A DNA stretch of 64,000 bases, from the IMG/VR virus record IMGVR_UViG_3300023202_000383, positions 1-64,000 of that record; one strand, 5' to 3'. Below, one piece after another: positions 11,769 to 41,922 of the stretch. Positions within the stretch are counted from its first letter, which is position 1, and every line of letters begins with the position of its first letter. The position numbers and the translations under genes are program-made. Under the pieces are notes generated by a model. The model did not search any database and was not told where the DNA came from. It was given only the letters and a program-made list of their open reading frames with translations.

Positions 11769-12404
11769 ATGGCACAATATTGTAATTCACAGAAATTAGA
11801 TACCATATGGGAATCGTGGCAGCTTTCTAGAGAGACCCCTGATTTAGAATTGGTCCGTGATTCTGGGTTGTTATGGACCAGAAGATGTGGCGACGATATG
11901 CTGCTACACTGCACGGCATCAGAGAATGATTTTTGGTTTGTGTCTATTAACGGTTCGATCCATTCATCTGATATTATTTTGGCTTTTAAATCCAGTACGT
12001 TTGAACCGGATTATGATTTGATTTCTGAGCTATCAGAATCTGAATTCATATATGAGCAAGACGAAATAGAAAGTTGGAACGAATTAGTGCACATGATAAT
12101 TCCGGTAGTGACTAATATATCTAAAAAATTCAATCCTAGGAATGAAGACGAAAAGTTTGAATTGATCCAAGAAGCCCTCTACGTGATATTAGACAAAATA
12201 AATAGAGGTATTCTTAAAATGAAGAAAGGCAAAGCCCCTTCATTTAATCTACTTACTACAGCAATAATAAATGCTATGCGGTCAATTAAAAATAAAGAGA
12301 ACCGCATCAAGACCAAGGATGCTAAGATATTTCAAGGGCTGATTAATTCAAAATGGCAAAATCGATCCTCGTACCAGTGTCAGCAATCTCTGGCAAACGA
12401 GTAG
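11769..12404 (+). CDS. sigma-factor region-2-like protein
   Basis: ELIQEALYVILDKI...PSFNLLTTAIINAMRS resembles region 2 of phage sigma factors. Confidence 0.55.
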   Translation: MAQYCNSQKLDTIWESWQLSRETPDLELVRDSGLLWTRRCGDDMLLHCTASENDFWFVSINGSIHSSDIILAFKSSTFEPDYDLISELSESEFIYEQDEIESWNELVHMIIPVVTNISKKFNPRNEDEKFELIQEALYVILDKINRGILKMKKGKAPSFNLLTTAIINAMRSIKNKENRIKTKDAKIFQGLINSKWQNRSSYQCQQSLANE

Positions 12405-13279
12405 CATATAAGAAGAAGCCCAGAGTAGGGGGAAAGACGGTTTCGATAAAGTCGAAAACCCCGATTGTCTCTCATAAAAGTATAAAGCCCAAGATAGGCA
12501 AAAGAACAAGGCAGATAGCTAGCACAAAGCAAAGGCTTAAAGCTAGCATAAATACTAAAAAGGGCGTCGTAAAAAACAGTCTCAACGGTGGGTCTGATCC
12601 GAGAATAAATGACTTAAGGAACAGTTGCGCCGGGAAACTACTTGTAATCATTGGGAATGGGCCGTCGCACAAAGAAGCACCACTATACAAGTTAAAAGAT
12701 TTAGATAATGTTGAGATGATGTGTGTAAACAGGCCCGACGAGAGAATATGGCCGCCGGACTACTGGACATTCTGCGACAACAGCCAGTATAAAAGACACC
12801 TGAATTTGTGGGAAAGGTTTGCCGGAACAATATTTAATACCAAATCTGTAAAAGCGGAAAAGACAAGTAGTATAAAACTGGTCACTAAAGCCGGTAGAGG
12901 GTTTAGTAACAATTTAAATAAAGGCGTCCATGTAGGAAGATCAACTGTATATACATCTATGCAGATTGCCACTTGGTTAGGGCATGATAAAGTGTACATA
13001 TTTGGATGCGATATGGCGGCAGTAAAAGGAAAGTTGTATCCATGGGGCTCTAACCCAGATGTTGATGATCAAACCAGAATAAATAGGTTCAAGAATGAAT
13101 CGGAATACTATTCCTGGGCCGCAGAAAACATGCCACAAAGGATTATAGATAAATTTGTATTTTGTAGTGCGTACAACACGTGGCCCTTTACAAAGAAATT
13201 CAAAACTATTGACCACATGCAGGCAGTAAAAAATATTATAAAGCTTTCCAAGGAGATGAGCAATGGCCAAGAAGAATGA
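12353..13279 (+). CDS. DUF115/MAF_flag10-like glyco-enzyme with K/R-rich N-terminus
   Basis: IIGNGPS, MCVN, STVYTSMQIA...GHDKVYIFGCD. Confidence 0.7.
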   Translation: MAKSILVPVSAISGKRVAYKKKPRVGGKTVSIKSKTPIVSHKSIKPKIGKRTRQIASTKQRLKASINTKKGVVKNSLNGGSDPRINDLRNSCAGKLLVIIGNGPSHKEAPLYKLKDLDNVEMMCVNRPDERIWPPDYWTFCDNSQYKRHLNLWERFAGTIFNTKSVKAEKTSSIKLVTKAGRGFSNNLNKGVHVGRSTVYTSMQIATWLGHDKVYIFGCDMAAVKGKLYPWGSNPDVDDQTRINRFKNESEYYSWAAENMPQRIIDKFVFCSAYNTWPFTKKFKTIDHMQAVKNIIKLSKEMSNGQEE

Positions 13280-14801: not shown

Positions 14802-15545
14802 TTATTTGCTCAATCTGTCATTTATAATTTTAGTACATTCTTCGCTCAATTCGACGCCCAAGAAATTCCGAGATTCTAATTTAGCAGCCATTAAACTAGA
14901 CCCACTTCCAGCAAATGGATCAAAAACCAAGCCGCCAGGCTTGCACATTGCCTTTACCCAGATTCTGACTAACTTCACAGGCATTTGGGTTGGAACACCT
15001 TTGACTCTTTCTTTATGTGTCCCTGCTATTCTCTTAAACGAGAAAACATCGTCCGGGCATTTACCTCTAGGATCAGCTCTTTTGTCATTATATAAAAGCT
15101 GCCTATCTGATGGCGTAGCAACCGATATTGGATCAAAATAACACTTCTTGTCTTTTCCGAATCTAAGGCCATGGGTCTTGCTTCTAGTGAATTTCTTTCT
15201 GTTATCTAGCTTTCCGCTCTGTCCGAATTTATAATGCCAAATAAGCCATTCTAAGCGTTTCATCTCCAGCTTTTTCCTACATATTGTATCTATATCTGAG
15301 ATATACTCATCGCCCATAAATATTAACATATTTCCGCCGCTCTTCAACAATCTGAAAGCTTCATATATCCACTCTTCAGACCACGCTAAAAAATCATCAT
15401 CAGGTCTGTTGTCATTATATGAGTCATACTTAAAATCAATATTAAACGGCGGATCTGCTATTATTAAATCCGCAAATGGTTTGTCTATTGTTTTCATCCA
15501 CTCTAAAGAGTTTCCGTTAATGCATTTGTTGATTTCCATAAGCAC
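14802..15545 (-). CDS. N4-cytosine/N6-adenine DNA methyltransferase (beta class)
   Basis: IADPPFN (motif IV) precedes FDPFAGSGS (motif I). Confidence 0.9.
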   Translation of the reverse strand: MLMEINKCINGNSLEWMKTIDKPFADLIIADPPFNIDFKYDSYNDNRPDDDFLAWSEEWIYEAFRLLKSGGNMLIFMGDEYISDIDTICRKKLEMKRLEWLIWHYKFGQSGKLDNRKKFTRSKTHGLRFGKDKKCYFDPISVATPSDRQLLYNDKRADPRGKCPDDVFSFKRIAGTHKERVKGVPTQMPVKLVRIWVKAMCKPGGLVFDPFAGSGSSLMAAKLESRNFLGVELSEECTKIINDRLSK

Positions 15546-15858: not shown

Positions 15859-16494
15859 ATGGGAATACTGTCTCACTCCAAAGTATACTTGTGCGGCCAA
15901 GTAGAGAGCGATCTAGATAACGCTTATTCATGGCGTTCATCTATGGCCGATATATTAAAAAGTATAAATAAAGAGATAATAGTTTGGGACCCTCTTATAA
16001 CTCCGTCATGGGTCCCAGATTTCTGCCAAGATCCGAAAGCTTTCGACAAAAGTATACTACACCATAACTTGTTTAATATAGATCCTGATCACGAATCAAG
16101 AAAAAGAATAGTAAACACAAATCTGATCGTTCGAAAGGTATGCCATAAATTAGCGTCGACATGCGATTGGATGATAGCCAGGTTGAGCGACAAATTCACA
16201 TGGGGTAGTATACAGGAACTTGAAATAGCCATACAGAGAGGTATCCCGATATTTATAATATATGCCGATCGACCGCTTAGCGTATATGGATCAACTGGCA
16301 TTTTAGAAAACAGGGTAGGAGATCCAATTATAAGCCATTTAGACGACTACGTATTCAATGATGTTAATAAAATGTATGATATAATTAGGGAATTGGACTC
16401 TAAAGGACCAGCTTCCGATTTGATTAAGAATGACCCATTTAAATGGTCTTTCATAACATACACAGACGGAGAAGACTATGCTCCCATTGCATAA
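15859..16494 (+). CDS. nucleoside 2-deoxyribosyltransferase / nucleotide N-glycosidase family
   Basis: VYLCG, WR, CDWMIA and GSIQELEIA (catalytic Glu retained). Confidence 0.7.
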   Translation: MGILSHSKVYLCGQVESDLDNAYSWRSSMADILKSINKEIIVWDPLITPSWVPDFCQDPKAFDKSILHHNLFNIDPDHESRKRIVNTNLIVRKVCHKLASTCDWMIARLSDKFTWGSIQELEIAIQRGIPIFIIYADRPLSVYGSTGILENRVGDPIISHLDDYVFNDVNKMYDIIRELDSKGPASDLIKNDPFKWSFITYTDGEDYAPIA

Positions 16495-17164
16495 ATTAGA
16501 AATTGATGTAACTAATTCAAAGCAGATAAACGAAGCTGCACAAATAGCCACAGAGCATTTTTGCGCAGCAGTTGTTGTTACTCCAGAGTTAGTTCAAGAT
16601 ACATTAATAGCCAGAAACATGTATCGCGGAAAATGGAAAATAATATCTACAGTTGATACTCCAAAAGGTCTGCAATTTGCAGACAATAAATTTAGGGGTA
16701 TGCCTGTTCAGTCATTGTCAGCCGATGGATACGAGATACTCTTAACTTATGGCGAAAAGAACGACATTGCCAGAGAAATAAAATATCTAAATCAATTTTA
16801 CAAAGGTCATTTTAGTCCATTAACCGAATTTAGATATACATTGGATTTTGGCACTGACAAAAGAGACGAAAAGTTCGTTCAAAATGTGTGTGATATTATC
16901 ACCAAAATATCTATGCCATCATTTTTGAGAAACACACATTTATGCAAAGTATCAGCTACAGCTGGTAGTAAAAGTTCGCTAGAAAAACAAACTAAAATGA
17001 TATCTGACAAGTCTGTTGTGCCAGTAAAACTTAGCGGCAACATTGATGCAGACAATTATACTGATATAGTTGTCCCAAGATTTGGCGTGAACCTCAAGCA
17101 AGCTAGGTCTATTATCAGGAAGCTAAAAGAAGCCAACGAAAAATTAACAGCTAAAGGGCGGTAG
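16478..17164 (+). CDS. DeoC-like TIM-barrel protein, Schiff-base Lys apparently replaced
   Basis: AAVVVTP, STVDTPKG, ADGYEI, VKLSG; FLRNTH stands where DeoC has FxKTSTG. Confidence 0.55.
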   Translation: MLPLHKLEIDVTNSKQINEAAQIATEHFCAAVVVTPELVQDTLIARNMYRGKWKIISTVDTPKGLQFADNKFRGMPVQSLSADGYEILLTYGEKNDIAREIKYLNQFYKGHFSPLTEFRYTLDFGTDKRDEKFVQNVCDIITKISMPSFLRNTHLCKVSATAGSKSSLEKQTKMISDKSVVPVKLSGNIDADNYTDIVVPRFGVNLKQARSIIRKLKEANEKLTAKGR

Positions 17165-17173
17165 ATTTGAAAT

Positions 17174-17779
17174 CTACTTTAATCTAGACGCTTCTTGCTC
17201 AATGCTCTGATCACTCGTTTCTTGTTGTTCTTTCATTTCGCCTTTTTCTTTGTCGATTAGACGAACCACGTACTGAATGATATCGCGATACCACCATAAT
17301 TCATCCTCTGATACGTCATTCGACAAATGCTTGTCGATTTTCAATACTTCAGACTTGATTTCAGATAACAATCTCTTCGTTTCAATGTTCATTCTGATTC
17401 GTCCTGATTCGTCCTGTTCGTCCTGTTCGTCCTGTTCATCCTGTTCATCCTGTTCATCCTGTTCATCCTGTTCATCATCCTGTTGGTTTGTGGTCTCACG
17501 TTCGACCAATTCATCAATTTCAATTTCTTCAATGAGTTTATTAGCTCTGGCAAACCACTTTTTGACCGCAGATCGGCTTTCGGTAACAACAAAAAAATTA
17601 CCACAGGGGGTATGTATTGTTACACAATTAAAGCCAAACGGGGGGATGCAAGTGTCGCAGTCGATATGGATTTCGATTCCGTTTTCGTGAACCAACTGCA
17701 CGGTGTATAAATCGACGCGGTTTGATGTCCATCCCTTTGTTCTGGACATCAATTTCCACATCTTCGTTTCAATGTTCAT
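17174..17779 (-). CDS. hypothetical protein; two MNIETK-initiated modules joined by a (DEQ)n linker
   Basis: GAAGGA RBS before ATG 17779; second MNIETK start at 17392. Confidence 0.6.
   Translation of the reverse strand: MNIETKMWKLMSRTKGWTSNRVDLYTVQLVHENGIEIHIDCDTCIPPFGFNCVTIHTPCGNFFVVTESRSAVKKWFARANKLIEEIEIDELVERETTNQQDDEQDEQDEQDEQDEQDEQDEQDESGRIRMNIETKRLLSEIKSEVLKIDKHLSNDVSEDELWWYRDIIQYVVRLIDKEKGEMKEQQETSDQSIEQEASRLK
17409..17483. repeat. 9-bp tandem repeat TCRTCCTGT, 7 full units plus 1 imperfect
   Basis: Read directly from sequence; encodes a DEQ repeat on the minus strand. Confidence 0.95.
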
Positions 17780-17944
17780 TCTGATTCCTTCTGATTCCTT
17801 CTTTCTTTTGATGTTACTGAATATCATTTGACTCGTCTCAAATCTTTTGCCGCCTTAATCGCCCGCTCTTTTCCGCCAAAATTGAAATTGCAGCGTTACA
17901 ATCAAGCAGTCCGTTTATTTTCTTCCCGACGTGCAGAAAAAGCT

Positions 17945-18379
17945 TTACAGAAAATTCCCAAGATACTGACGGAGAAGAATAATAACGTCATCTCCGTTAA
18001 TCGATCTCAGTTCCAGATCTTGTATATCGTCGAAATCATGCTGGTGCGAGAATACCAAACCTGACATATTAAAAGACACATCTTTTTTAGTGGCAAATCT
18101 ATGTGCCGCATTGTTCGCATATATTGTTTGGTGCTCCCGATGAAAATCTAGATCAACCGACGTAATAATTATTTCATGTGTTATCAGTACCATCGGCGTC
18201 TTTATATATGGAACGTTAGCATGTTCGCTTATATATAAATCTGCGGCGGCAATTACAGTTCTTGGGACACCGGCCAGAGTGCTGATAGGACTGGAATCAA
18301 ACAAAGATGCTAATTCGTAGCTAGGCTTTATTCTGGTCAAGTGAGTATGAGAATCTATTCTCGGGTACGGTAACATCAA
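17945..18379 (-). CDS. hypothetical protein, last gene of the purZ operon
   Basis: Start overlaps the sulfotransferase stop codon. Confidence 0.55.
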   Translation of the reverse strand: MMLPYPRIDSHTHLTRIKPSYELASLFDSSPISTLAGVPRTVIAAADLYISEHANVPYIKTPMVLITHEIIITSVDLDFHREHQTIYANNAAHRFATKKDVSFNMSGLVFSHQHDFDDIQDLELRSINGDDVIILLRQYLGNFL

Positions 18380-18951
18380 GCTGGATATCCAAAGATCTCA
18401 AAATCCATGTCCAGTTTACTATAAGCCACTCGCTTTAAGTCGTCATCGTAATATTCGGACCAATGCTTGTGGTCTGTAGAATTGTGCTTATCTAATTTTA
18501 AATCAATCCCTATAGTCTTTACAATAGCGTTGAAATCCTCGTCTAGATTTTCGAATCGCCCAACAAAGTCAACGACTATTTTGCTTCTATCATCACATAT
18601 CCATCTTCTTTGTCTCCACCAATCTAGAGAATTATTTATTATAAAATCTTCGAATGTCTTGTACTTTTCCGTGAATTTAATGATATTTCTTTTATAATTG
18701 TATTCATAAGCAGACACTAAATGATCATACGGGTTCCTTACGAATGCGAATTTATAGTAATTTGCCCATTCCTCTGGAAATCTTCTCTTTATTTTCCGCC
18801 AAGTAACATGATGATAATCGTCGCTATCGATTTCGTCGTTTGGGACTATATCATTAGCTATATTGCCTTTTTTCATGGCAAATTTTATGCTAGTCCCAGC
18901 GGTCTTAGGGATATGGACAAATATGAACTTGTGTTTGTGCGAAATAATCAT
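18376..18951 (-). CDS. sulfotransferase family 2 protein
   Basis: FIFVHIPKTAGTS (5'-PSB), FAFVRNPYDHLVSAY (3'-PB), DFVGRFENL. Confidence 0.88.
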   Translation of the reverse strand: MIISHKHKFIFVHIPKTAGTSIKFAMKKGNIANDIVPNDEIDSDDYHHVTWRKIKRRFPEEWANYYKFAFVRNPYDHLVSAYEYNYKRNIIKFTEKYKTFEDFIINNSLDWWRQRRWICDDRSKIVVDFVGRFENLDEDFNAIVKTIGIDLKLDKHNSTDHKHWSEYYDDDLKRVAYSKLDMDFEIFGYPA

Positions 18952-20156
18952 ACGTTTGCGAACACCACACTATCCGTACTTGGCCCGTGACTCCAGAATG
19001 ATGCCTCAACTCTATCTGGCAGGCAATCAAGATTATGATGTCTTATGAAATCTTTCATCTTTTCGTCGCCATATCTTTTAGACCCAACATAATTTAAAAA
19101 CGTGAACGCCAAGTATATCTTAAATGGGTTTGGGGGCATATTTTTTATTATAAAATCTTCTAATGCGAGTGTCGAAAATCTCATAATACGCCTAGGTAAC
19201 TTGGTAAGTGTAGTCATTTCAACAGGCACATCATAGCCAGCGATTCTCGACACCTCTTCCCAAGTCAATTCCTCACTGTCTTTAAATATATCGCCACTAT
19301 ATGAATCTACTTCTTCATATTCCTTGCCTTCCGATTCATATATCTGCACTTCATCCCAAGTTAAGAACTTTCTAGACTCTTTGTCAAGATATCTCTTGCT
19401 ATTTATTCTAATTGGCATAGTTCTATTTACTCCAATAATGTTGCCAATCAGATTCGGCGGCAGGTCCATGTCTGACATAAGCCCACCCACTGTGGTAGCT
19501 CTACTTGTGCAGTTAGGGTAGAAATTGGAATATAACGACAAGAAATGGCCTTGACTACCGTCCATAAGTGCGGTCGAGCTACTTAATTCAATTATCATAT
19601 CCAAAGGATCATATATCATATCCTTTAATTCATCATAGTCTTTAGCAACCTTCGTCTTTCTTAAGGACTTCTTGGCTCTACATGCGCCGCTTCCGGACCC
19701 AGTTGTGCCGTGCTTGCTTGTGCCCTTATATGGGTCAACTTCATTGTATGGGTCGCCCTCGAAGTTTTTTACTCCATTCTCAAAATCTATGTCATCCTGC
19801 GTGACTATCCCGGCATTGGGGTGTATATGTACGTGCGTTTTGGGGATATTTAGATCATGCATTTCTTTCAAAAGATCGTCTATGACAAACGCAGAACCGG
19901 GGCCAATAACCGCATGCGGCTCATATGGGATACCGTTTGCTAGATAACCATAATAAAACATACCAGATGGTAGTATTTTGAAGACATATTTTGTTCCGGA
20001 ATCTCTTACGGTATGGCTAGCGTTTCTGCTATTAGCAGTCAAAAGATAACGGGGGCAATTATTTTTAGCTAAATACGCTGATATTAGGCCTTTAGATTCA
20101 GATCCAAATTGTGCACCAAGACAAATATTTACTTTGCCGTTCTCGAAAAAACTCAT
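18948..20156 (-). CDS. purZ: PurZ-type adenylosuccinate-synthetase homolog (2-aminoadenine pathway)
   Basis: AQFGSESKG (Ser at the PurA Asp13 position), NASHT, DGSQG..LSLY..FYP..TSR, RTMPIRI, TTLTKLPRR (Leu at the PurA Arg303 position), TFLNY. Confidence 0.85.
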   Translation of the reverse strand: MSFFENGKVNICLGAQFGSESKGLISAYLAKNNCPRYLLTANSRNASHTVRDSGTKYVFKILPSGMFYYGYLANGIPYEPHAVIGPGSAFVIDDLLKEMHDLNIPKTHVHIHPNAGIVTQDDIDFENGVKNFEGDPYNEVDPYKGTSKHGTTGSGSGACRAKKSLRKTKVAKDYDELKDMIYDPLDMIIELSSSTALMDGSQGHFLSLYSNFYPNCTSRATTVGGLMSDMDLPPNLIGNIIGVNRTMPIRINSKRYLDKESRKFLTWDEVQIYESEGKEYEEVDSYSGDIFKDSEELTWEEVSRIAGYDVPVEMTTLTKLPRRIMRFSTLALEDFIIKNMPPNPFKIYLAFTFLNYVGSKRYGDEKMKDFIRHHNLDCLPDRVEASFWSHGPSTDSVVFANV

Positions 20157-20979: not shown

Positions 20980-21314
20980 TAGCACAATGGAACAAATCTC
21001 CAATTGATGTATTCGGTACTCCCAACGGCTTTGATGCTTCAATATGCGGCTACTGTGAGGAGAAAAACGGAAGGTTCTATGTGTATATTGTACTTGAAAT
21101 AAACCAAAACAACTCTACATCATCGTATCTTCTTAAAGAAAATTCTAGAAAGATATTTGGACATGTTGATGTTGATAATATAGAGTCGCCGCACTTACAA
21201 AAGCAGATAGATAAGTTAAATGGAATATCTCATAAAGATTTAATAATAAAAGCCCAGCTATATGAATCAAAGGGTAAACTATTAGATGAAAATTGGAATA
21301 TTTTCAAAGTTTGA
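20976..21314 (+). CDS. hypothetical protein
   Basis: ATGA-coupled ORF. Confidence 0.65.
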   Translation: MIAQWNKSPIDVFGTPNGFDASICGYCEEKNGRFYVYIVLEINQNNSTSSYLLKENSRKIFGHVDVDNIESPHLQKQIDKLNGISHKDLIIKAQLYESKGKLLDENWNIFKV

Positions 21315-22362
21315 TATGGCTGGCGGTTCTGAATTCAGAGCCGCTGAAATGGCCAATGCGATAGCTAAATACAGCAATCACGAGTCTCTTATTCTGGCAG
21401 AGAAGCAAGTGCCAACCAGGATAAGAGACTATGTGAATAATAGTGTTAAAATAATTGAAAACGTAGTGCTACCCCAACCAAAGAACAAAGACGTTCTTTA
21501 TGAGGTAGATTCCCTTTTAGTCATCAATACTGATTCAAAAGATTTTACAACATTAGACTATTGGCAAGGCAAATCCACTAGGCATAGTGCTGTCATAGAT
21601 GTCTCTAAAATCAAGCAGATATGTTTTTTATTTAATTGGATAGTCAGCCCGTCTAGGCATCTATTCAAGCTTAATGAACTATCTGACATAAGAATAATCA
21701 CCACAAACGAGAAATTCTTTAAAGAAATAAGCGATCAAGACAGATATGAAATGGTAAGACATCTGCCTAGAACAATATTAAGAAGCCCAATAGATAATAC
21801 CAAATTCGACGACATCACAAGAAAACCATTAATCGATAGACCAATAAGAGTTGGAATGCATTCTAAATCCGTTGGGAACAAATGGAACAAAGAATTTAAA
21901 GACTTAATTAAGTACACAACAACCAAATATGGTAACAAAGTCCATTGGAAATTCATGGGAATGTCAAGAGAGCTAACTGAGTCTTTAAAACAAACCGATG
22001 GTAATATAACGATATCAAAAGAATTCGCAGAAGAAGTACCTCAGTTCCTATCTGATTTAGATATATTTACATTTTATATATCATGGTCCAGAGAAGAACC
22101 TTGGTCTAGAGCTTGTGCTGAGGCTATGGTTAGCGGATTGCCTGTCCTGGCGACCAACAAAGGTGGTAATAAAGATCAAATAGTGCATGGTAACAATGGA
22201 TTTTTATGTAAATCGCTACAAGATTTCAAAAATCACCTGACCGTCTTGATAGAGCACCCAGGAATTATATCAGATATGGCAAGAAATTCTAGGATATTGT
22301 CAAAGCAATTCCATAGCCAAGAAATAATCAGACAGTATATAAATTTTATAGATGCTCATTGA
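21286..22362 (+). CDS. glycosyltransferase family 4 (GT-B)
   Basis: AGGSE, REEPWSRACAEAMVSGLPVLATNKGG. Confidence 0.88.
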   Translation: MKIGIFSKFDMAGGSEFRAAEMANAIAKYSNHESLILAEKQVPTRIRDYVNNSVKIIENVVLPQPKNKDVLYEVDSLLVINTDSKDFTTLDYWQGKSTRHSAVIDVSKIKQICFLFNWIVSPSRHLFKLNELSDIRIITTNEKFFKEISDQDRYEMVRHLPRTILRSPIDNTKFDDITRKPLIDRPIRVGMHSKSVGNKWNKEFKDLIKYTTTKYGNKVHWKFMGMSRELTESLKQTDGNITISKEFAEEVPQFLSDLDIFTFYISWSREEPWSRACAEAMVSGLPVLATNKGGNKDQIVHGNNGFLCKSLQDFKNHLTVLIEHPGIISDMARNSRILSKQFHSQEIIRQYINFIDAH

Positions 22363-23143
22363 AAAAGAACAATATAAAGTATCCATGTGTACAACATGCA
22401 TGGATAGGCTATATACATTAAGAGAAACTCTTCCGAAGAACATAGAAGATAATGCTGACTATCCATTTGTCGAATTCGTTGTCTTAGATTACAATAGCAA
22501 AGATGGCTTGGGCGACTGGATAAAAGAAAATATGATGCCATTTATAGAATCTGGCATCGTCAGCTATTATAGAACAGAAGAGCCTCAATATTTTAGTATG
22601 TCACATTCAAGGAATATTGCTTTCAGAGTAGCATCTGGTGACATAGTAAATAATTTAGACGCTGACAACTTCACCAATCAAGGGTTTGCGTCCAGAATAA
22701 ATGAAATGGCACAACTGGGATCAAAGGATAGGGAAGTTGCATACCCAAACCCAGCAACAGAAGTAAATAAAGTCATGTTTGGTAAAGGCAAAAAGCTATT
22801 AAGAGGCAGATTGGGGTTCTTCAAGAGCGACTTCGTAAACCTTTTAGGTGGATATGACGAAGATCTGCAAGGATATGGTCACGACGATAGGGATTTGTAC
22901 AACAGAGCTATGAAACTTGAGTTTAATTTGTTGTGGTTTGGTGGCCAATATGTCGATAGAATAAAAACTTCCAGAGCCGAAAAAGTAGTAAATATGAAGA
23001 TAAAGGACTGGAAGAAGACAGAAAATATGAACAAAGAAGTAAGCAAGAAGAAAATAGACGCGGGTATATATAAAGCTAATCAGAATAGGCATTGGGGCAA
23101 AGCAACCCTAATAAAAAATTTCGATCAAGAAATACAAATATGA
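22352..23143 (+). CDS. glycosyltransferase family 2 / GT7-like
   Basis: SMCTTCMDRL, VVLDYNS, NLDADN, GGYDEDLQGYGHDD. Confidence 0.85.
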   Translation: MLIEKEQYKVSMCTTCMDRLYTLRETLPKNIEDNADYPFVEFVVLDYNSKDGLGDWIKENMMPFIESGIVSYYRTEEPQYFSMSHSRNIAFRVASGDIVNNLDADNFTNQGFASRINEMAQLGSKDREVAYPNPATEVNKVMFGKGKKLLRGRLGFFKSDFVNLLGGYDEDLQGYGHDDRDLYNRAMKLEFNLLWFGGQYVDRIKTSRAEKVVNMKIKDWKKTENMNKEVSKKKIDAGIYKANQNRHWGKATLIKNFDQEIQI

Positions 23144-23859
23144 GCAGAAGCATATCATTTTGCACCACAACCTTCAACAGGTTGGAGCATTTAAGCAAGA
23201 CTCTGCCATATAACATCAGAGATAATCGCCTATATTCTAAATTAGAATTAGTTATTCTTGACTGCGGATCTAAAGATGATACGCATAAATTCATGAGACA
23301 GTTCGAAAACCTTATGGAAGTCGGTAAGCTATCATATTATAAATTATTGTGGCCTGAAATCGAGTTCTTTGATGCAGCAAGAATGAAAAACATATGCCAT
23401 AAATTAGCAAATGGTGAATTACTGTGCAATTTAGATGTTGACCAATACTCTACAAAAGGGTTCGCAAGAAAATTAAATATATTGTGCAAGCATAAAAAGG
23501 ACAAATTCATAATAAGCAAAAATGGAAAATTGTGGGGAAAGTTGGCTGTCCTAAAGAAAGATTTCATCAAGATGCTTGGCGGATATGATGAATCAATGGA
23601 TGGTTATTGGTCTGATGATGAGGACTTATTTAATAGAGCTATTGCACAAGATTTTGAGCCAATAAGATTTAATAATGGGTTCAAAATGATTCACCACGAC
23701 AGATCAAGCAAATACTTCACATATGATCATGACAACAAAACCAAAAACAGGATAATATCTAATAAAAACATATTAGATCATAGATATAAAGCCAATATAG
23801 ATAGACAATGGGGCTGTGGAGTATTATTAAAAAACTTTCGTGAAGAAATCAAGATATGA
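23140..23859 (+). CDS. glycosyltransferase family 2 / GT7-like (tandem paralog)
   Basis: SFCTTTFNRL, ILDCGS, NLDVDQ, GGYDESMDGYWSDD. Confidence 0.85.
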   Translation: MSRSISFCTTTFNRLEHLSKTLPYNIRDNRLYSKLELVILDCGSKDDTHKFMRQFENLMEVGKLSYYKLLWPEIEFFDAARMKNICHKLANGELLCNLDVDQYSTKGFARKLNILCKHKKDKFIISKNGKLWGKLAVLKKDFIKMLGGYDESMDGYWSDDEDLFNRAIAQDFEPIRFNNGFKMIHHDRSSKYFTYDHDNKTKNRIISNKNILDHRYKANIDRQWGCGVLLKNFREEIKI

Positions 23860-24626
23860 AAAATCTTTTGGTAGCAAATTTCCAGCCTCCAGCCGATAGC
23901 GGTAACGATAAAAAGAAAGGTATGGACATAAATGGCTTAAAACTATTTATAAATGCTCAGATAGACAATAGCCTTCATTTAGGGTGGGACCCTAAAGACA
24001 TAATATTAGTCACAAATTTTATGCATCATTACAACGGCATAAATGCTTTTGTGACTAATTTAAACTCTAGTTGCCTGACTGGTAGCAAAATGTTTACTAT
24101 AAAATGGCTTTATGAAAACAATATAATAGATGATACGATATGGGCTCATGATTTAGATGCATGGCAGAATGATCCATTTTACGAGCCAGAATTTAAAGAT
24201 GTAGGAGTCTCAACATATAGCAGACCCAAATTCAACGGCGGTAGTATATTCATAAAACCGTCGGCCTTGGATATTATCAATGAAATAATAAATAATATAA
24301 TTACAAATAATGAAGATAGAGAAGAACCAACTATAAATGAAATTTTAAAATCAAATAAATACAAAGACAGAGTCACTGTACTAAATAACACGTATAATGT
24401 TGGGTGTTCTGGATATAAGGAGAGATACGAAAGAAGCAGCAAACCAATAAAAGTTTGCCATTTTAATCCACTAAATAGATTAGCATGGTGGACATTTGTT
24501 GGTGATAGACACAAATTAGGTCAAGCAGCCTCTGACAGATTAGCTTCTTTGTTGACCAAAAAATTCGGCAAGTATCAAAGCTTCAGAAGCGTGCCTTATA
24601 CTATGGATGAAAGAGATTTTAAATGA
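23856..24626 (+). CDS. nucleotide-diphospho-sugar transferase-like protein
   Basis: WAHDLDAW DxD motif, FNGGSIF, YNVG, CHF. Confidence 0.65.
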   Translation: MKNLLVANFQPPADSGNDKKKGMDINGLKLFINAQIDNSLHLGWDPKDIILVTNFMHHYNGINAFVTNLNSSCLTGSKMFTIKWLYENNIIDDTIWAHDLDAWQNDPFYEPEFKDVGVSTYSRPKFNGGSIFIKPSALDIINEIINNIITNNEDREEPTINEILKSNKYKDRVTVLNNTYNVGCSGYKERYERSSKPIKVCHFNPLNRLAWWTFVGDRHKLGQAASDRLASLLTKKFGKYQSFRSVPYTMDERDFK

Positions 24627-25363: not shown

Positions 25364-25585
25364 ATGTTTAAATGGCTTTTCGGCAGCAAGAAGCAAGAAA
25401 TGCATATCCATGTACATGTGGATGGTATTTTGAATGTTCAAGGTCAGGATTTAAAGCTTGGCATAAATTCGGATGCAGATATAAGCAACAATAAACAGGA
25501 TCCAAAAGAATCACACATACCTGAAATGGACCCGACAATTGGAGAAATTGACTTACCGCAGGTAGAATTTGGCGAAGAGGACTAA
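25364..25585 (+). CDS. small acidic protein with N-terminal amphipathic helix
   Basis: MFKWLFG start; preceded by the CAAATATA motif. Confidence 0.6.
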   Translation: MFKWLFGSKKQEMHIHVHVDGILNVQGQDLKLGINSDADISNNKQDPKESHIPEMDPTIGEIDLPQVEFGEED

Positions 25586-25586
25586 A

Positions 25587-26615
25587 ATGATTAAAATAGG
25601 ATTAGATCTTGGCACAAAGACAATCGTTTCTGCTAAAAGAGGCGAAGAAAACAAGCCTATATTCAAGCATGAAATAAATGGGTTTTATGAATTCCCGACA
25701 CCAGATAGCTTTACAAAAAAGCTGTTGGTTGGTCAGAAAATACCATTTGTTGAGAAGGATGGCAAGATATATGCTCTTGGCCGGAAGGCTGAGCAGTTTG
25801 CATATGCTGTCAATTCTACTCTTCGTAGACCGATGGCTGATGGTACAGTTAGCAAAGAGGAAGAAGCCATTAATATTATGGCATCGATTGTCCATGCTAT
25901 AATTGGCAAGTTAGATGATGATGCAATATTGTACTATTGTATCCCAGCAGACGCTATAAATAAGAGCACAAATGTGCAGTTCCACCAGAAGATTGCACAG
26001 ATGATAATTGATCGGTATCAAAGAAGTAAAGTAACTGTCAAGGGTTATCCTATCAATGAAGCCAGAGCGTTAGCTATAGGTTCTGGTGAGCCGGTTTGTA
26101 TTGCTGTGTCATTTGGTGCTGGTATGGTCAATGTTTGTTATTGCATGTACGGCATGTCAGTGTTTGAATTCAGTTTAGTTGGTAGCGGAGACCGGGTTGA
26201 TGCGGAGGCTGCTAGGCAGTTTGGATATGATCCAGAAAATCCAAATAAGAGCAGTCGCGAAACGCCGACAACCATGTGTAAGAGAAAGCACCAAATAGAT
26301 CTGACAAAATCTAAAGATGAAGTAGATAGAAAAGACCAGGCGATAATGATTTCGTATCAGATTCTGATAGAGAATGTTGTTGACGGTATTATAAAGGGTT
26401 TCAACGAAAACGAAGAAAAAGCCAAGATAGATCAGGCAATCCCTGTTGTAATAGCTGGTGGTACTTCATCTCCTCCGGGGTTCGGCGAATATTTTGAGGA
26501 GATTATGAAGTCTAAAGAACCCCCGTTTGAAATATCCACTATAACGGTACATCCTAGACCATTATATGCTGTTGCGGAAGGTTGTCTTATCGCTTCTGAG
26601 AGTCATGAGGAATAA
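25587..26615 (+). CDS. actin-fold ATPase (MreB/MamK/ParM superfamily)
   Basis: GLDLGT (phosphate 1), NEARA (connect 1), SFGAG (phosphate 2), IAGGTS (adenosine), PLYAVAEG (connect 2). Confidence 0.85.
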   Translation: MIKIGLDLGTKTIVSAKRGEENKPIFKHEINGFYEFPTPDSFTKKLLVGQKIPFVEKDGKIYALGRKAEQFAYAVNSTLRRPMADGTVSKEEEAINIMASIVHAIIGKLDDDAILYYCIPADAINKSTNVQFHQKIAQMIIDRYQRSKVTVKGYPINEARALAIGSGEPVCIAVSFGAGMVNVCYCMYGMSVFEFSLVGSGDRVDAEAARQFGYDPENPNKSSRETPTTMCKRKHQIDLTKSKDEVDRKDQAIMISYQILIENVVDGIIKGFNENEEKAKIDQAIPVVIAGGTSSPPGFGEYFEEIMKSKEPPFEISTITVHPRPLYAVAEGCLIASESHEE

Positions 26616-29232: not shown

Positions 29233-29991
29233 ATGGCTAGAGAGTTCTTTGATACTGTTGCTACTAAAGCTGGTTTGGCTGGCGAATATGAAGAACTAAT
29301 TGAGTCTGAATTCGCCGCCTCGGCTGGACCAGCGTATACGCCCGGCGAAGATGGAATTTTTAGGGTAGTTGCCTCTAGGACAATTCAGTTATTGAAGGGT
29401 AGTCCAATCTATGTGGAGACTTTTCAGGACTCTGCTGCCACCCTACGAGTTCCGTCTGGGCTAATAGCAAGCAATGATGCCAACGATGGTAGATTTTATT
29501 TTGTCAAGAACAGCGGAATTGGGAATGTTGCATTACAAGATCACTTAGGTGGATCTTTGGCGGCAATCCGTAAAGGTCAATTTGTTGTTGCCCTACATGG
29601 AGATGATGATAATTGGGATGCTTCTGGGTTGCTTAGTTCCGACGCCGTCGTCGAAGTCAAGAACACGTTGACGACCACGGACACACTGCTGAACACGATC
29701 GCCACGATCGACGTCGACCCCAGCACCGTACACCATCTGGACGTGACGATCACGGCGCGGGAGGGCGACAATAATAGAGGGTCGTTCGTGCGTAAGGCCA
29801 CGATTTACCGTAATTCGACGGGCGGGGCAGCAATCGAGAATAACGTAATCGTGGTATTTGACGAGAGCAGCAGCGGTAACTTTAAGATAGCTGTCGTGGC
29901 GAGCGGCAACAGCATACTCATTCAGGTTCAGGATGAGCAGGGGCAAACGGTGAACTGGACCAGTTGGCACAAACTCTACTCACAGGCGTGA
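29233..29991 (+). CDS. putative fibre/structural protein, chimeric (AT-rich 5' half, GC-rich 3' half)
   Basis: Codon composition switches abruptly near 29640 with no break in frame. Confidence 0.65.
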   Translation: MAREFFDTVATKAGLAGEYEELIESEFAASAGPAYTPGEDGIFRVVASRTIQLLKGSPIYVETFQDSAATLRVPSGLIASNDANDGRFYFVKNSGIGNVALQDHLGGSLAAIRKGQFVVALHGDDDNWDASGLLSSDAVVEVKNTLTTTDTLLNTIATIDVDPSTVHHLDVTITAREGDNNRGSFVRKATIYRNSTGGAAIENNVIVVFDESSSGNFKIAVVASGNSILIQVQDEQGQTVNWTSWHKLYSQA

Positions 29992-29992
29992 C

Positions 29993-30634
29993 ATGATTAC
30001 CGGCATCACACAATTCGGGTTGGAGGGGCGTGTAGCAACGGTGGATCACGACCCGGCTATCGTGTCGACCGATGTCCCCGCAGGTTCGATTATCCTGTCG
30101 ACCTCCACAGGATTGCTCTACCGAAAACTCACCGGCGGCAGCAACACGGATGTGTTGCCGATGACCGCTTCCAGTCAGCCGTTCGATTGGGACAGCGGGG
30201 CGTCGGCGGTCGCGGCGGTCGTCGCGGCCGGGATGCTGTCGCTCGAATTGCTTGCCGATACCGACTCGAAGGTAGTCGGCGGCGACGTTGCCCCGCTGCA
30301 CGTCGACCTCGATCAGGCGTTGGAGCTTGACGTCAAGATCGTCACCCTCAGCTTGGGCGACGCGTCGGCCGACGCGCACCTGCGGCTGACGGCCCGCTAC
30401 GTGGGGTTGGGCGAGGCGGCGGACAAGACGCCCGACGAGACGATCGACCACATCTTTGAAGTCGCCAACGTAGATAAGTGCGTGCACGCCGTGACGTTCA
30501 CACTGGACCCGTCGCTTATCTCCCCCGAAGACCTGCTAAACCTGGAGCTGTCGCGGCTGGGCACGTCAGCGAGTGACGTGTTTACCGGCTCCATCGGCGT
30601 TGCCGAGAGGTCGCTGCTGAGGTTCTTTAACTGA
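29993..30634 (+). CDS. putative structural (beta-rich) protein in GC island
   Basis: Coupled to neighbours; high GC3. Confidence 0.65.
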   Translation: MITGITQFGLEGRVATVDHDPAIVSTDVPAGSIILSTSTGLLYRKLTGGSNTDVLPMTASSQPFDWDSGASAVAAVVAAGMLSLELLADTDSKVVGGDVAPLHVDLDQALELDVKIVTLSLGDASADAHLRLTARYVGLGEAADKTPDETIDHIFEVANVDKCVHAVTFTLDPSLISPEDLLNLELSRLGTSASDVFTGSIGVAERSLLRFFN

Positions 30635-31164
30635 TGGCAAGCACGTACGAACTGATACTGTTCCGCGAGGAGACCCGAGACGACGGGAAGGTGGCGTTGC
30701 TGCGTATCCCGTTGGTGGCCGGTGCGGGGATCGACCTCGACGCGGTGATCGGGGAGGTATCCGCCGGTAGCGGTGTGAGCGTGCAGGAGGGATACGCCGA
30801 GAGCGAAGGGACCAGTTCGACGACCAGCACCAACTTTCAGCAAAAGCTCCGCGCCAGCTTGACGGGTCTAGACGCCGGTACGTATGAGGTGGCGTGGTCT
30901 TGTGAGGTGTTGCCCGGCAAAAACAATCTGGCTGCCCGCGTGCGGGTTCAAGTGGATGACACGACGACGCTAAACAGCCCTGACCCGGTCCTCAATCGAG
31001 ACAATAGCGGGGGCAACGTGAAGGGCTGGATGCCTCTCAGTGGGTTCCGTCAATTGGCATTGAGCGCCGGGGATCATGACTTCGACATCGACTTTGCTTC
31101 ACCTCAGAACGGAAAGTCAGTAGATATCCGGTTTGCGCGTATCAAAATAGCGAGGACAAATTAA
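30634..31164 (+). CDS. putative structural/fibre-tip protein in GC island
   Basis: TGATG coupling; beta-sandwich-like composition. Confidence 0.65.
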   Translation: MASTYELILFREETRDDGKVALLRIPLVAGAGIDLDAVIGEVSAGSGVSVQEGYAESEGTSSTTSTNFQQKLRASLTGLDAGTYEVAWSCEVLPGKNNLAARVRVQVDDTTTLNSPDPVLNRDNSGGNVKGWMPLSGFRQLALSAGDHDFDIDFASPQNGKSVDIRFARIKIARTN

Positions 31165-32106
31165 GTGGCCGAGCAAGCATACACGTACAGCATCGCCAGC
31201 GACTTCCCGTCGGGCGCGGTCAACACGCAGAAGCTGCACGACGAGGTCGTGGCCGACACGGCGATCACGACGCAGCTCGACCGCATCGACACCGACGGCG
31301 ACGGCTTGTCAATCGTGTTTCAGGCGGCGCTGTCGGCGGCGGAGAAGACGGCGCTGGACGGCGACACGACCGGACCGGCCGGGGGGCTGATCGCGCAGCA
31401 CGACAACAGCGCGTCCGCCCCCGACTACGGGAAGATGCAGATCGACGGGATCTCCCCGGACGCCAACGGCTCGCTGCCGCAGGCCCCGATCATCTCCACG
31501 CCGGGCCACCGGCTCAACGACCGCGACGTGCTGGTGCGGGTGGGCGAGTTCGACAACCCGTTCGAGGACCTGCGGGTCAACCCCGACGACAACAAGGAAG
31601 TGGCGTGGGGCGAGGTCACGTGCGACCCGGCCGACACCGATCCGGCGAACAAGACCGGGGTATTCAAGCTCGACGGCAACGGCGACTGGGTCCGCTGCAC
31701 CGACCAGACCGACGCGGCCGCCAACGCCGGGCTCACGGTCCTGGAGTACCAGGCCCGGCAGGGCGGCGTGGCCGGGGGCGATGCGCTCAAGTACGACGTG
31801 CGGGGCGGGACGCTGTGGGTCGACTCCAACGTGCCGGACGACGGCGACCGCTGGTCGCACCGCGTCTATTCGGTCGGTGCCCCGGACCTGTCGGCCGTCC
31901 TCGGCGGCCGGGTGCCGTTCTTCGACGGTTACCTGTTTCCCTATCGCAACAACTGGATGCAGACGCTCAATCCCGTGGCGTTCCCGATGGATCCGTCGGC
32001 GTCGGCGGCGGCGAGCATCGTCCGCGTGTGGTTCTATTACAAGGCGGGCACGGCGTACGAGCACGTGCTGCGGTTCCACCTGTACCGACCGACCGGAAGC
32101 TGGTAG
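31165..32106 (+). CDS. putative structural protein in GC island
   Basis: GTG start directly after the upstream stop; very high GC3. Confidence 0.7.
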   Translation: MAEQAYTYSIASDFPSGAVNTQKLHDEVVADTAITTQLDRIDTDGDGLSIVFQAALSAAEKTALDGDTTGPAGGLIAQHDNSASAPDYGKMQIDGISPDANGSLPQAPIISTPGHRLNDRDVLVRVGEFDNPFEDLRVNPDDNKEVAWGEVTCDPADTDPANKTGVFKLDGNGDWVRCTDQTDAAANAGLTVLEYQARQGGVAGGDALKYDVRGGTLWVDSNVPDDGDRWSHRVYSVGAPDLSAVLGGRVPFFDGYLFPYRNNWMQTLNPVAFPMDPSASAAASIVRVWFYYKAGTAYEHVLRFHLYRPTGSW

Positions 32107-32118
32107 GGTTTCCCATTC

Positions 32119-32190
32119 ATGAAGCTAATATTCTGCCCAGACTGCCGGGACGTGTTTAAGCTAGTCCGCGATGAGCCCCGTAAATGCTGA
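32119..32190 (+). pseudogene. truncated N-terminus of a small Zn-binding protein (MKLIFCPDCRDVFKLVRDEPRKC)
   Basis: CxxC...C start that stops at the island boundary. Confidence 0.5.
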
Positions 32191-32237
32191 GATTCTTGCT
32201 ATATCGAGACCCATCTGCTTAGTATTTGGATTAAGCT

Positions 32238-32888
32238 ATGGCTGACAAGATCAGTGTGCTTATGCCAACATATAATCGTGCGCACTTGATAGGTGTGTCT
32301 ATAAAGTCTATATTGTCCCAGACCCATAAAAATGTTGTTTTGTGCATCTATGATGATGGGTCTACTGACAATACAGAAGATGTCGTAAAATCATTTGGCG
32401 ATAACAGAATCATATATCATAAATCCGGAAAGAATTCTGGGTGTCCAGTTGCTAGAAATAAACTTCTTGAGATGGCCAATACTAGGTATGCTTGTTGGCA
32501 AGATAGTGATGATATCTCAAATAAGCATAGAATAAGAGAACAATTGAAGGCTATAAAGAAGTCGAAGGCGGCTATGGTTTGGTCTACGTTTAGGTGGTTT
32601 GACAAAGATATTGGCGATTCTTGGATGGAAGAACCAAAATCGCATAGTGGTACGGCTGCCCATGCTAGCATAATGTTTGAAGTATCTAAGGCCGTGCCAT
32701 TTAGATTGGTAAAAACTTTGGGTGGAGAAGATGCTAAGTGGCGTAGAGAAATAGAATCAGTTTATGGCAGGACGTTAAAAATCCCCAAAATATTGTATTA
32801 TGTAAGAAAGCACAATGATAGGATTGGGGTATGGAAGAAGAATCCTAAAGCCAATAAAGACTGGTACAACAGGATGGTCAAAAGATGA
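32238..32888 (+). CDS. glycosyltransferase family 2
   Basis: ISVLMPTYNR, YDDGSTD, WQDSDD. Confidence 0.92.
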   Translation: MADKISVLMPTYNRAHLIGVSIKSILSQTHKNVVLCIYDDGSTDNTEDVVKSFGDNRIIYHKSGKNSGCPVARNKLLEMANTRYACWQDSDDISNKHRIREQLKAIKKSKAAMVWSTFRWFDKDIGDSWMEEPKSHSGTAAHASIMFEVSKAVPFRLVKTLGGEDAKWRREIESVYGRTLKIPKILYYVRKHNDRIGVWKKNPKANKDWYNRMVKR

Positions 32889-33529: not shown

Positions 33530-33702
33530 AAGACGTCGGCAAAGCCAAACTGGAATCAGAGAAAGCTTTAACTGAGTATCTAAAATGCCAGCAAGAACTG
33601 CTGGTAATGATCAATAAACAAATGGATCTGGGAAGAATCTACGCTGAGAAGAGAGCCGAATATTTGGCTTTGAAAGAAGATAATGAGCCAGGAATTGATT
33701 AA
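33526..33702 (+). CDS. small helical hypothetical protein (58 aa, absent from the ORF track)
   Basis: GTG overlapping the upstream TGA; open to TAA at 33702. Confidence 0.45.
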   Translation: MKDVGKAKLESEKALTEYLKCQQELLVMINKQMDLGRIYAEKRAEYLALKEDNEPGID

Positions 33703-35327: not shown

Positions 35328-35397
35328 AATAAAATATCTTTGATTACAGATAGATCCTCTGCATTGCGTGTTGTATTTTATATACATGGTTGACATA

Positions 35398-41920: not shown

Positions 41921-41922
41921 AT

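Follow-up and report, generated by a model that had tools for sequence, protein, structure and literature searches.

A long-form PurZ-family gene linked to predicted NDT-like and DERA-fold genes in a jumbo phage

A jumbo phage encodes a divergent, longer version of PurZ, the enzyme that starts synthesis of the DNA base 2-aminoadenine (Z). Within the stretch of DNA analyzed here, the first 64,000 nucleotides of IMG/VR record IMGVR_UViG_3300023202_000383 (hereafter the window), the gene is unaccompanied by the usual helpers DatZ, MazZ and DpoZ, but its family is tightly linked to two different genes of nucleotide-breakdown type, suggesting a second, undescribed way of building a Z-DNA pathway. 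The gene, an intact ATG-to-stop ORF of 402 aa at 18948-20156 on the minus strand, lies on a 332-kb JGI contig (Ga0255825_1000035) from which a 256.5-kb UViG was derived; megablast of 20 kb against 50,697 phage records gave no match. The initial annotation described a PurA-fold protein with QFGSESKG, NASHT, TTLTKLPRR and TFLNY motifs in a large phage with a DnaE replicase, and this observation holds: the motifs are present exactly as reported, at residues 16-23, 45-49, 315-323 and 352-356, respectively. Its interpretation, that the protein is PurZ and that the genome may replace adenine with Z using a C-family polymerase, is only partly supported: the PurZ lineage, the jumbo phage, the C-family polymerase and the suggested new subfamily are borne out, whereas replacement of A by Z remains a well-motivated inference.

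Homology of the 402-aa protein to this enzyme superfamily is far beyond chance. Pfam Adenylsucc_synt scores 72 bits (E 4e-20), PHROG matches agree, and the NCBIfam PurZ model NF038379 is the best of six models at 147.6 bits; this score is half the curated 300-bit cutoff, but the model is of the “exception” type and, we assume, was built on the short classical PurZs. NCBIfam PurA models score 25-127 bits against cutoffs of 368-700. The best matches among solved structures are PurZ of Vibrio phage PhiVC8 (6fko, E 4e-28) and of cyanophage S-2L (7odx, E 2.5e-23), ahead of archaeal-type PurA (5k7x, E 2e-20) and PurZ0 (7vf6, E 2.6e-8). In a 206-sequence alignment, Ser19 aligns with E. coli Asp13 (literature numbering) and PhiVC8 Ser14, Leu320 with Arg303, and T-F-L-N with T-K-L-D. 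Asp13 is 99% conserved in PurA and replaced by Ser in 100% of phage PurZ/PurZ0 sequences (PMC12884076), and every member of the clade described below has Ser here. [quoted passage not shown] Their counterparts are F17, S19, T315, F353, Y356, W299, P248 and N355. The T-F-L-N-Y stretch corresponds to N-F-C-N-Y of PhiVC8, whereas PurZ0 from the Arthrobacter phage Litotes has T-M-L-D-Q and E. coli PurA has T-K-L-D-V.

These comparisons correct several details of the initial annotation, which listed SKG for GKG, NASHT for NAGHT and T-F-x-N as extra deviations that could mark a new subfamily with a different substrate. T-F-x-N-Y is not a deviation but the PurZ motif itself; NASHT is a signature shared by most of the long-form clade, including Flavobacterium phage MaF61; and the P-loop Ser occupies a variable G/S/A position at which the Litotes PurZ0 homolog has Ala.

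Phylogeny, the test proposed at the outset to separate PurZ from PurA and PurZ0, places the protein inside a 66-sequence clade (support 100/98) that holds the three characterized PurZs, those of PhiVC8, S-2L and SH-Ab 15497. PurZ0 lies outside this clade and PurA is a distant outgroup at 99/98; a quick 201-sequence tree agrees. The PurZ0 and PurA assignments are thus rejected on both residues and tree. Within this crown the protein belongs to a monophyletic (97/85) long-form subclade of about 400-490 aa found only on viral contigs, often of 80-340 kb; the UViGs of two long-form loci, L048 and L051, are of 320-341 kb. No long-form PurZ was found in about 185,000 cellular genomes, so this is a viral function rather than host purine synthesis. 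The gene is nucleotide-identical in three samples, leaving selection analysis uninformative. Compared with the PhiVC8 and S-2L enzymes, the protein shares only 26-29% identity, is 40-60 residues longer and is found on large contigs rather than ~40-kb genomes. The clade has its own changes near the active site, Gly to Ser in NAGHT, Val to Leu in TTVTK, and a 30-80-aa insert after the PIR motif.

The genomic context of the long-form clade differs from that of the short PurZs. Among 36 dereplicated long-form loci, none has DatZ, MazZ or DpoZ within 10 kb, whereas among 37 short PurZ loci 24 have DatZ and 29 have DpoZ. Long-form loci instead carry other purine-deoxynucleotide genes that fit the Z pathway, PurB in 12, guanylate kinase in 6, a MazG-like gene in 8 and an adenosine-deaminase-family gene in 5 of 36 loci, or an NDT/DNPH1-like gene plus a DERA-fold gene; the deaminase set and the NDT/DERA set do not overlap. 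The window has the latter pair, at 15859-16494 and 16478-17164 on the plus strand, a module that the initial annotation did not mention. Of 14 IMG/VR loci with the NDT-like gene, 13 have the DERA-fold gene adjacent and 12 have a PurZ-like gene within 2.5 kb, while a 13th locus comes from a UViG that carries it about 27 kb away; all three genes occur together in 13 of the 14 contigs. The three genes are contiguous and codirectional in one long-form locus (L031), but in the window the PurZ-like gene is inverted and 1.8 kb away from the pair.

The 211-aa product of 15859-16494 is tentatively placed in the nucleoside 2-deoxyribosyltransferase superfamily: 7 of 8 family members match Pfam PF15891 (best E 9e-8) and 5 of 8 match PF05014, although the window member hits Pfam only at E 0.1; a PDB profile search returned YtoQ (E 0.002); and the top Foldseek hits of a mediocre model (pLDDT 65) are NDTs, human DNPH1 and CMP N-glycosidases. 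Y10, D103 and E120 are invariant in the family, and the Asp and Glu motifs align by hhalign with the NDT-like, N-terminal part of Litotes gp51 (E 8e-4). The 228-aa product of 16478-17164 has a confident AF2 model (pLDDT 91.6) with eight β/α units, and its top ~50 Foldseek PDB hits are nearly all deoxyribose-5-phosphate aldolases (E 1e-10, TM 0.70-0.74), whereas a sequence-profile search of the PDB gave no meaningful hit. Identity to the fold-level matches of both proteins is 10-16%. A weak hhalign match to E. coli DeoC (E 0.037), covering only β2-β4, puts a hydrophobic residue at Asp102. Judged by strand position alone, without structural superposition, against Lys167 (the Schiff-base lysine) and Lys201 of E. 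coli, β7 has Lys in 7 of 9 members, whereas β6 appears to end in Arg in 7 of 9, at the position we take to be that of the Schiff-base lysine. With the hydrophobic residue at Asp102, this Arg makes aldolase chemistry doubtful.

In the leftward operon of the PurZ-like gene, a Sulfotransferase_2 gene at 18376-18951 (minus strand; PF03567, 71.6 bits) overlaps its stop codon by 4 nt, followed by a 143/144-aa ORF at 17945-18379 (minus strand), a called gene in the JGI record with no Pfam hit. A sulfotransferase homolog lies near PurZ in only one other locus (L051), 7 kb away, and the gene is probably not part of the nucleotide module. DnaE is encoded collinearly but in three separate plus-strand ORFs, identified by Pfam and by tblastn with E. 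coli DnaE: 35368-36747 (PHP, 139 bits, and the start of DNA_pol3_alpha; E. coli residues 6-377), 39423-41192 (palm and fingers, DNA_pol3_alpha and DNA_pol3_finger; residues 281-759) and 41905-43071 (HhH/β-binding region, HHH_6; residues 759-1043). The only PolA-like ORF in the window (52813-53985) covers the C-terminal third of PF00476 and matches SH-Ab DpoZ at E 0.006. Among about 80 window ORFs scanned, none is HD, MazG, NUDIX or dUTPase, and none is a MazZ or DUF550 (d)GTP/(d)ATP pyrophosphohydrolase; nothing in the window converts dATP to dAMP. phmmer probes for DatZ (three probes), MazZ, DpoZ, PrimPol, DutZ, PurB and other Z-cluster neighbors against all six-frame ORFs gave nothing at E<=10, with a working positive control, as did probes for A_deaminase, PurB, NUDIX and guanylate kinase from clade relatives. 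These negatives apply to the window and not to the remaining 268 kb of the contig; pattern scans of IMG/VR for PurB or A_deaminase did not return this contig, which is only weak negative evidence.

We posit, with a probability of about 0.6, that the ORF encodes a long-form PurZ that, like its PhiVC8 and S-2L homologs, condenses dGMP with aspartate, using ATP, to give N6-succino-2-amino-dAMP. Host PurB would cleave this product to dZMP, since no phage PurB was seen in the window, and host guanylate and nucleoside-diphosphate kinases would then raise it to dZTP. In this view, the NDT-like protein plays the role that DmtZ plays in PurZ0 phages, cleaving dAMP to adenine and deoxyribose-5-phosphate and possibly moving the sugar-phosphate onto Z, whereas the DERA-fold protein would bind or process the released deoxyribose-5-phosphate. 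Together they would drain deoxyadenylate, so that a nonselective replicase, here the split DnaE, puts Z opposite T, and the pair would stand in for DatZ, MazZ and DpoZ in this lineage. What our analysis establishes is family membership, the diagnostic residues, the clade structure and the gene linkage; the enzymatic activity and substrates, the dA-depletion role and any Z content of the DNA are inferred, by homology and from sequence alone, for every member of the clade. An N6/N4 DNA methylase and a Mom-family domain in the window may imply ordinary adenine in the DNA.

Precedents exist for parts of this scheme. NDT-family enzymes are experimentally tied to Z synthesis: DmtZ is a dAMP-specific hydrolase/transferase (PMC12884076), and NDT-M2 prefers dA, as described in a preprint. 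[quoted passage not shown] The PurZ0/DmtZ/DutZ system of Arthrobacter and Gordonia phages likewise combines a PurZ-family synthetase with an NDT-superfamily enzyme that acts on dAMP. However, PurZ0 keeps the Asp of the GTP motif (Asn355 in the protein studied here), DmtZ is usually fused to DutZ and accompanied by DpoZ-1, and the window has no Dut-like or PolA partner, a DERA-fold gene instead, and only remote similarity to the DmtZ-like domain. The consecutive reactions of DNPH1 and DERA, dNMP to base plus dR5P and then dR5P to glyceraldehyde-3-phosphate plus acetaldehyde, would form a logical dNMP-destruction pair. The closest protein in any deposited phage is the putative adenylosuccinate synthetase of MaF61 (PQ858689, ORF141; 35.8% identity), a 168-kb myovirus that shares the long-form clade and signatures and is its one cultured member. 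MaF61 carries its own PurB and a NUDIX protein, its PurZ-like gene sits among structural genes, and no relative of the window's NDT-like or DERA-fold proteins was found in any phage record. The MaF61 paper does not discuss the gene or DNA modification, and no paper in the literature searched links PurZ with DnaE, jumbo phages or adenosine deaminase.

Other readings cannot be excluded but appear less likely. The long-form clade may have moved to another guanine nucleotide (GMP or a modified dGMP), or its succinylated product may feed a further hypermodification, so that the DNA base is not plain 2-aminoadenine or is only partly substituted. The clade-specific active-site changes and insert, the subthreshold PurZ score, the absence of DatZ, MazZ and DpoZ from 36 loci, and the cotranscribed sulfotransferase, several nearby glycosyltransferases and the Mom-family domain would all fit this view. 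Yet every residue reported to contact the 2-amino group and the ATP base is conserved, the sulfotransferase is linked to PurZ in only 2 loci, and the recurrent partners (PurB, guanylate kinase, MazG-like, NDT-like) are exactly those expected for the ordinary dZTP route, so we consider it unlikely.

Less probable still is an auxiliary PurA-like role, in which the enzyme would act on IMP or dIMP to boost (d)ATP supply for an AT-rich (62% A+T) genome with canonical DNA. Large phages commonly carry nucleotide-metabolism genes, and some clade members carry a deaminase, synthetase and lyase triad that formally equals the purine nucleotide cycle; against this stand the Ser at the Asp13 position, the ATP-stacking F-x-N-Y in place of K-L-D, the position of the clade inside PurZ, and a kinase partner that is guanylate kinase, not adenylate kinase. 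Equally improbable is a nucleotide-pool weapon that would deplete host dGMP or dAMP, or make Z nucleotides, to poison host replication or counter a nucleotide-sensing defense while phage DNA stays largely canonical. No selective polymerase and no dATPase are visible, and the partners look catabolic (N-glycosidase-like and aldolase-fold), but any dZTP made would also be used by the phage's own nonselective polymerase, as in S-2L, which does this with a PrimPol-type replicase (a PrimPol gene is annotated in S-2L), and no defense or antidefense context was seen, albeit without a PADLOC search.

Every Z-genome phage discussed in the papers that we read is a roughly 40-60-kb phage that uses DpoZ or PrimPol together with DatZ, MazZ or DutZ/DmtZ-type helpers. 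The boldest scenario compatible with our data, which we regard as possible but less likely than not, is that a widespread lineage of large and jumbo phages makes Z-DNA (or a derivative) without DatZ, MazZ or DpoZ, excluding adenine through a previously unknown route in which a dAMP N-glycosidase of the NDT family is coupled to a DERA-fold protein of new chemistry, and replicating the Z genome with a bacterial-type, gene-split DnaE. Long-form genes are currently annotated as “adenylosuccinate synthetase” or “hypothetical” and would be missed by the curated PurZ model, but a cultured member, MaF61 on Flavobacterium sp. B330, makes the question directly testable. If the long-form clade is active, Z-DNA, or a related purine replacement, would reach jumbo phages of 150-340 kb, and a bacterial-type Pol III α could copy a Z genome. 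Adenine exclusion would have been solved yet again with new enzymes, adding to the “functional convergence” described in PMC12884076, and the DERA-fold partner could be a new enzyme activity on deoxyribose-5-phosphate or deoxynucleotides.

The ORF at 18948-20156 on the minus strand is intact, starts with ATG and encodes 402 aa. The translation contains QFGSESKG, NASHT, TTLTKLPRR and TFLNY, and the observation recorded in the initial annotation, a PurA-fold protein bearing these motifs, is confirmed. The protein matches Pfam Adenylsucc_synt at 72 bits and also matches PHROG 1211. Among NCBIfam models, the PurZ model NF038379 scores best at 147.6 bits, which is below its 300-bit cutoff, and an archaeal-type PurA model is second at 127 bits. 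Among solved structures, the best matches are PhiVC8 PurZ (6fko, E 4e-28) and S-2L PurZ (7odx, 2.5e-23), which rank ahead of Pyrococcus PurA (2e-20), bacterial PurA (about 1e-9 to 1e-12) and PurZ0 7vf6 (2.6e-8).

The identical protein is encoded on a 332,374-bp JGI metagenome contig (Ga0255825_1000035) and on two short contigs from other samples, and the gene is nucleotide-identical in all three. The window is the first 64 kb of IMG/VR UViG_3300023202_000383, which is 256,507 bp long; the IMG/VR entry omits the first ~75.8 kb of the 332-kb contig, a part that could be host DNA, a trimming artefact or phage DNA. The window is 38% G+C, has no tRNA and carries a large-phage replication and recombination set: an XPD-like helicase, a Rad50-like ATPase, RecA with a LAGLIDADG intein, DnaB, UvsY-like and gp32-like proteins, a 5′-3′ exonuclease and a UDG. 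In the regions 47576-49741 and 51010-52110, RecA carries an intein with a LAGLIDADG endonuclease domain and the DnaB_C ORF shows a weak intein-splicing trace at its N-terminus. An ORF at 25569-26615 is a strong match (167 bits) to Volactin, an archaeal actin homologue, here encoded by a jumbo phage and conserved in a related 341-kb UViG (locus L051, 18615-19679). A 2.6-kb island at 29600-32200 reaches 56-72% G+C and covers three called ORFs (29993-30634, 30634-31164 and 31165-32106) with no Pfam match; it may be a recent acquisition from a high-GC source. The window also has an unusual density of glycan-modifying genes (12353-13279, 18376-18951, 21286-24626, 32238-32888 and 59009-59668), comprising one Sulfotransferase_2, one GT1, three GT2-type glycosyltransferases and two MptE-like proteins, one of the latter with a weak sialyltransferase CST-I hit; their target could be virion protein, the host surface or DNA.

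The initial annotation described a large phage whose replicase is a DnaE. DnaE is indeed present and collinear with E. coli DnaE residues 6-1043, but it is split into three ORFs (35368-36747, 39423-41192 and 41905-43071) separated by a 2.7-kb insert and a 0.7-kb gap. The insert holds a 611-aa ORF (36778-38613) whose N-terminal part is paralogous to two other window ORFs (33699-35396 and 63349-63999, with DUF723/treble-clef zinc-finger hits), which makes it look like a mobile homing-type gene, whereas its C-terminal part hits the Pfam Mom family (46 bits) and weakly hits GNAT. A relative of these ORFs also sits next to PurZ in L012 and L035, two of the other PurZ loci that we retrieved. There is no DpoZ or PrimPol in the window. 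The only family-A trace is a 390-aa ORF at 52813-53985, which matches only the C-terminal third of the polymerase profile PF00476 (47.9 bits), is too short for a full polymerase and is very distant from SH-Ab DpoZ (E 0.006).

To ask whether the protein is a PurZ, we aligned it with 198 database homologues and eight references: PhiVC8, S-2L and SH-Ab 15497 PurZ, Arthrobacter phage Litotes PurZ0, E. coli PurA, Bacillus phage vB_BpsS-140, Burkholderia phage BCSR129 and MaF61. [quoted passage not shown] Ser19 aligns with the catalytic Asp13 of E. coli PurA. The PurZ0 reference has T-M-L-D-Q at 294-298 and E. coli has T-K-L-D-V; the T-F-L-N-Y of the query is therefore the PurZ (ATP-type) motif and not, as the initial annotation had considered, an extra deviation. 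PurZ0 reportedly uses GTP and PurZ ATP (Tong et al. 2023); the wording in PMC12884076 gives the opposite order, which we believe is a slip. Leu320 sits at the Arg303 position, as in S-2L and SH-Ab PurZ. The real deviations are the P-loop Gly to Ser21, at a position that varies between G, S and A and is Ala in PurZ0 Litotes, the changes from NAGHT to NASHT and from TTVTK to TTLTK, and an insert of about 33 residues after P-I-R.

A quick 201-sequence tree and a careful 89-sequence IQ-TREE run (LG+C20+F+G4) agree. The query lies in a 9-member group (100/100) inside a long-form clade (97/85), which in turn lies inside a 66-sequence clade (100/98) that contains all three characterised PurZs. PurZ0 Litotes and archaeal-like sequences fall outside, and PurA is the outgroup (99/98). 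Clustering with PurA, the outcome set beforehand as one that would overturn the assignment, was thus not observed: this is crown-group PurZ, in a distinct branch. About 50 metagenomic proteins of the long-form clade share 30-52% identity with the query; they are 385-503 aa long, and many are on contigs of 80-340 kb. Most share N[AS]SHT, T[TS]LTK and [NT]FxNY, although some sub-branches have reverted to G and V. Among 50,697 deposited phage genomes only one belongs here, Flavobacterium phage MaF61, a 168-kb myovirus, at 35.8% identity; all other phage hits are at or below 30%. The paper on MaF61 does not discuss the gene. A scan of about 185,000 bacterial and archaeal species genomes found no member.

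We next retrieved 80 IMG/VR loci plus four metagenome loci with 10-kb flanks and searched their six-frame ORFs with HMMs built from reference accessory proteins. After dereplication, the 37 loci with short crown PurZ had DatZ in 24, DpoZ in 29 and MazZ in 13, whereas the 36 long-form loci had none of the three. Instead, the long-form loci had a PurB-like lyase in 12, guanylate kinase in 6, a MazG-like gene in 8, an adenosine/AMP-deaminase-family gene in 5, an NDT-like gene in 8 and a DERA-fold gene in 9. MaF61 has its own PurB and a NUDIX protein. PurB and guanylate kinase are the steps that host enzymes reportedly supply after PurZ in the classical pathway (Zhou et al.; Sleiman et al. 2021), and MazG-like, deaminase and NDT-like enzymes are plausible ways to lower dATP or dAMP. 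In the aligned deaminases, the metal-binding and catalytic His, Glu and Asp residues are invariant; these genes lie next to long-form PurZ genes in another sub-lineage (loci L012-L015, L050 and L064), directly adjacent in L015, and represent a candidate deaminase-based route for removing adenine nucleotides. The deaminase-bearing loci and the NDT/DERA-bearing loci do not overlap.

Clustering of all ORFs around long-form genes showed that window ORFs 15859-16494 (211 aa) and 16478-17164 (228 aa) have homologues immediately upstream of the PurZ-like gene in about ten loci; in locus L031 the three genes are contiguous on one strand. We provisionally assign the 211-aa family to the NDT superfamily: 7 of 8 members hit Pfam PF15891 (best 9e-8), the member in the window only at E 0.1, and 5 of 8 hit PF05014, the PDB profile hit is YtoQ (E 0.002), and Foldseek returns NDTs, human DNPH1 and CMP N-glycosidases, although the underlying model has a pLDDT of only 65. 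Its invariant Asp and Glu motifs align with the NDT-like N-terminal part of Litotes gp51 (E 8e-4), which we take, on the basis of PMC12884076, to be a DmtZ-DutZ fusion. The 228-aa family has no sequence-level match in Pfam or PDB profile searches, but it is confidently predicted (pLDDT 91.6) to fold into an eight-stranded barrel whose top ~50 Foldseek matches are nearly all deoxyribose-5-phosphate aldolases (E 1e-10, TM 0.70-0.74). Its catalytic equipment is doubtful: hhalign to E. coli DeoC is weak and places a hydrophobic residue at Asp102 and, by strand position, the presumed Schiff-base site is Arg in 7 of 9 members.

In the reciprocal test, of 14 IMG/VR loci that carry the NDT-like gene, 13 have the DERA-fold gene adjacent, 12 have a PurZ-like gene within 2.5 kb, and one more (L193) comes from a UViG that carries a long-form PurZ about 27 kb away (locus L048); none has DatZ, DpoZ, PurB or the deaminase. 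The sister group of the long-form clade (L046 and L047) also has a DERA-fold gene directly upstream of PurZ. Neither partner has any relative in deposited phage genomes. In the window, the PurZ-like gene is inverted relative to the pair and heads a leftward operon with a sulfotransferase (4-nt overlap), which is not a conserved partner, and two ORFs of unknown function. Between the pair and this operon lies a 217-aa ORF (17174-17827) with a perfect acidic (DEQ)n tandem repeat and an internally duplicated RMNIETK segment.

In the literature searched, we found no paper that links PurZ to DnaE, jumbo phages or adenosine deaminase. The most recent survey found 481 PF00709 homologues in NCBI viruses, placed 147 phage sequences in the PurZ/PurZ0 group and describes DatZ, MazZ-2, DUF550, DutZ, DmtZ and DUF5664 as the helpers; a long-form clade with an NDT-like plus DERA-fold module is not mentioned there. 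The family is already known, but this branch of it differs from those described in its long form and in the genes that accompany it.

The interpretation in the initial annotation, a PurZ in a large phage that may replace adenine with 2-aminoadenine using a C-family replicase, is partly supported. Family membership, residues, clade structure and gene linkage are established by the present analysis, whereas the substrates, the enzymatic activity, the dA-depletion role and the Z content of the DNA are inferences. No dATP-to-dAMP enzyme is visible in the 64 kb, a search that leaves 268 kb of the contig out of view; the chemistry of the DERA-fold protein is uncertain; the clade has its own active-site changes; and an N6/N4 DNA methyltransferase (14802-15545, 155 bits) and the Mom-family domain might imply ordinary adenine. 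A UDG-superfamily protein is encoded at 45001-45621 (104 bits), and UDG domains are reported in the preprint as enriched on dZ-modified contigs. A shifted substrate or further hypermodification of the product is possible but unlikely, and a PurA-like metabolic booster or a nucleotide-pool weapon, which we consider about equally improbable, are less likely still.

We favor, with a probability of about 0.6, a reading in which the protein is a functional PurZ that makes N6-succino-2-amino-dAMP from dGMP, Asp and ATP, with host PurB and kinases completing dZTP. In this view, the NDT-like and DERA-fold pair would remove deoxyadenylate, by analogy with DmtZ, a dAMP-specific hydrolase and transferase (PMC12884076), and with NDT-M2, which prefers dA, and a non-selective split DnaE would then incorporate Z.
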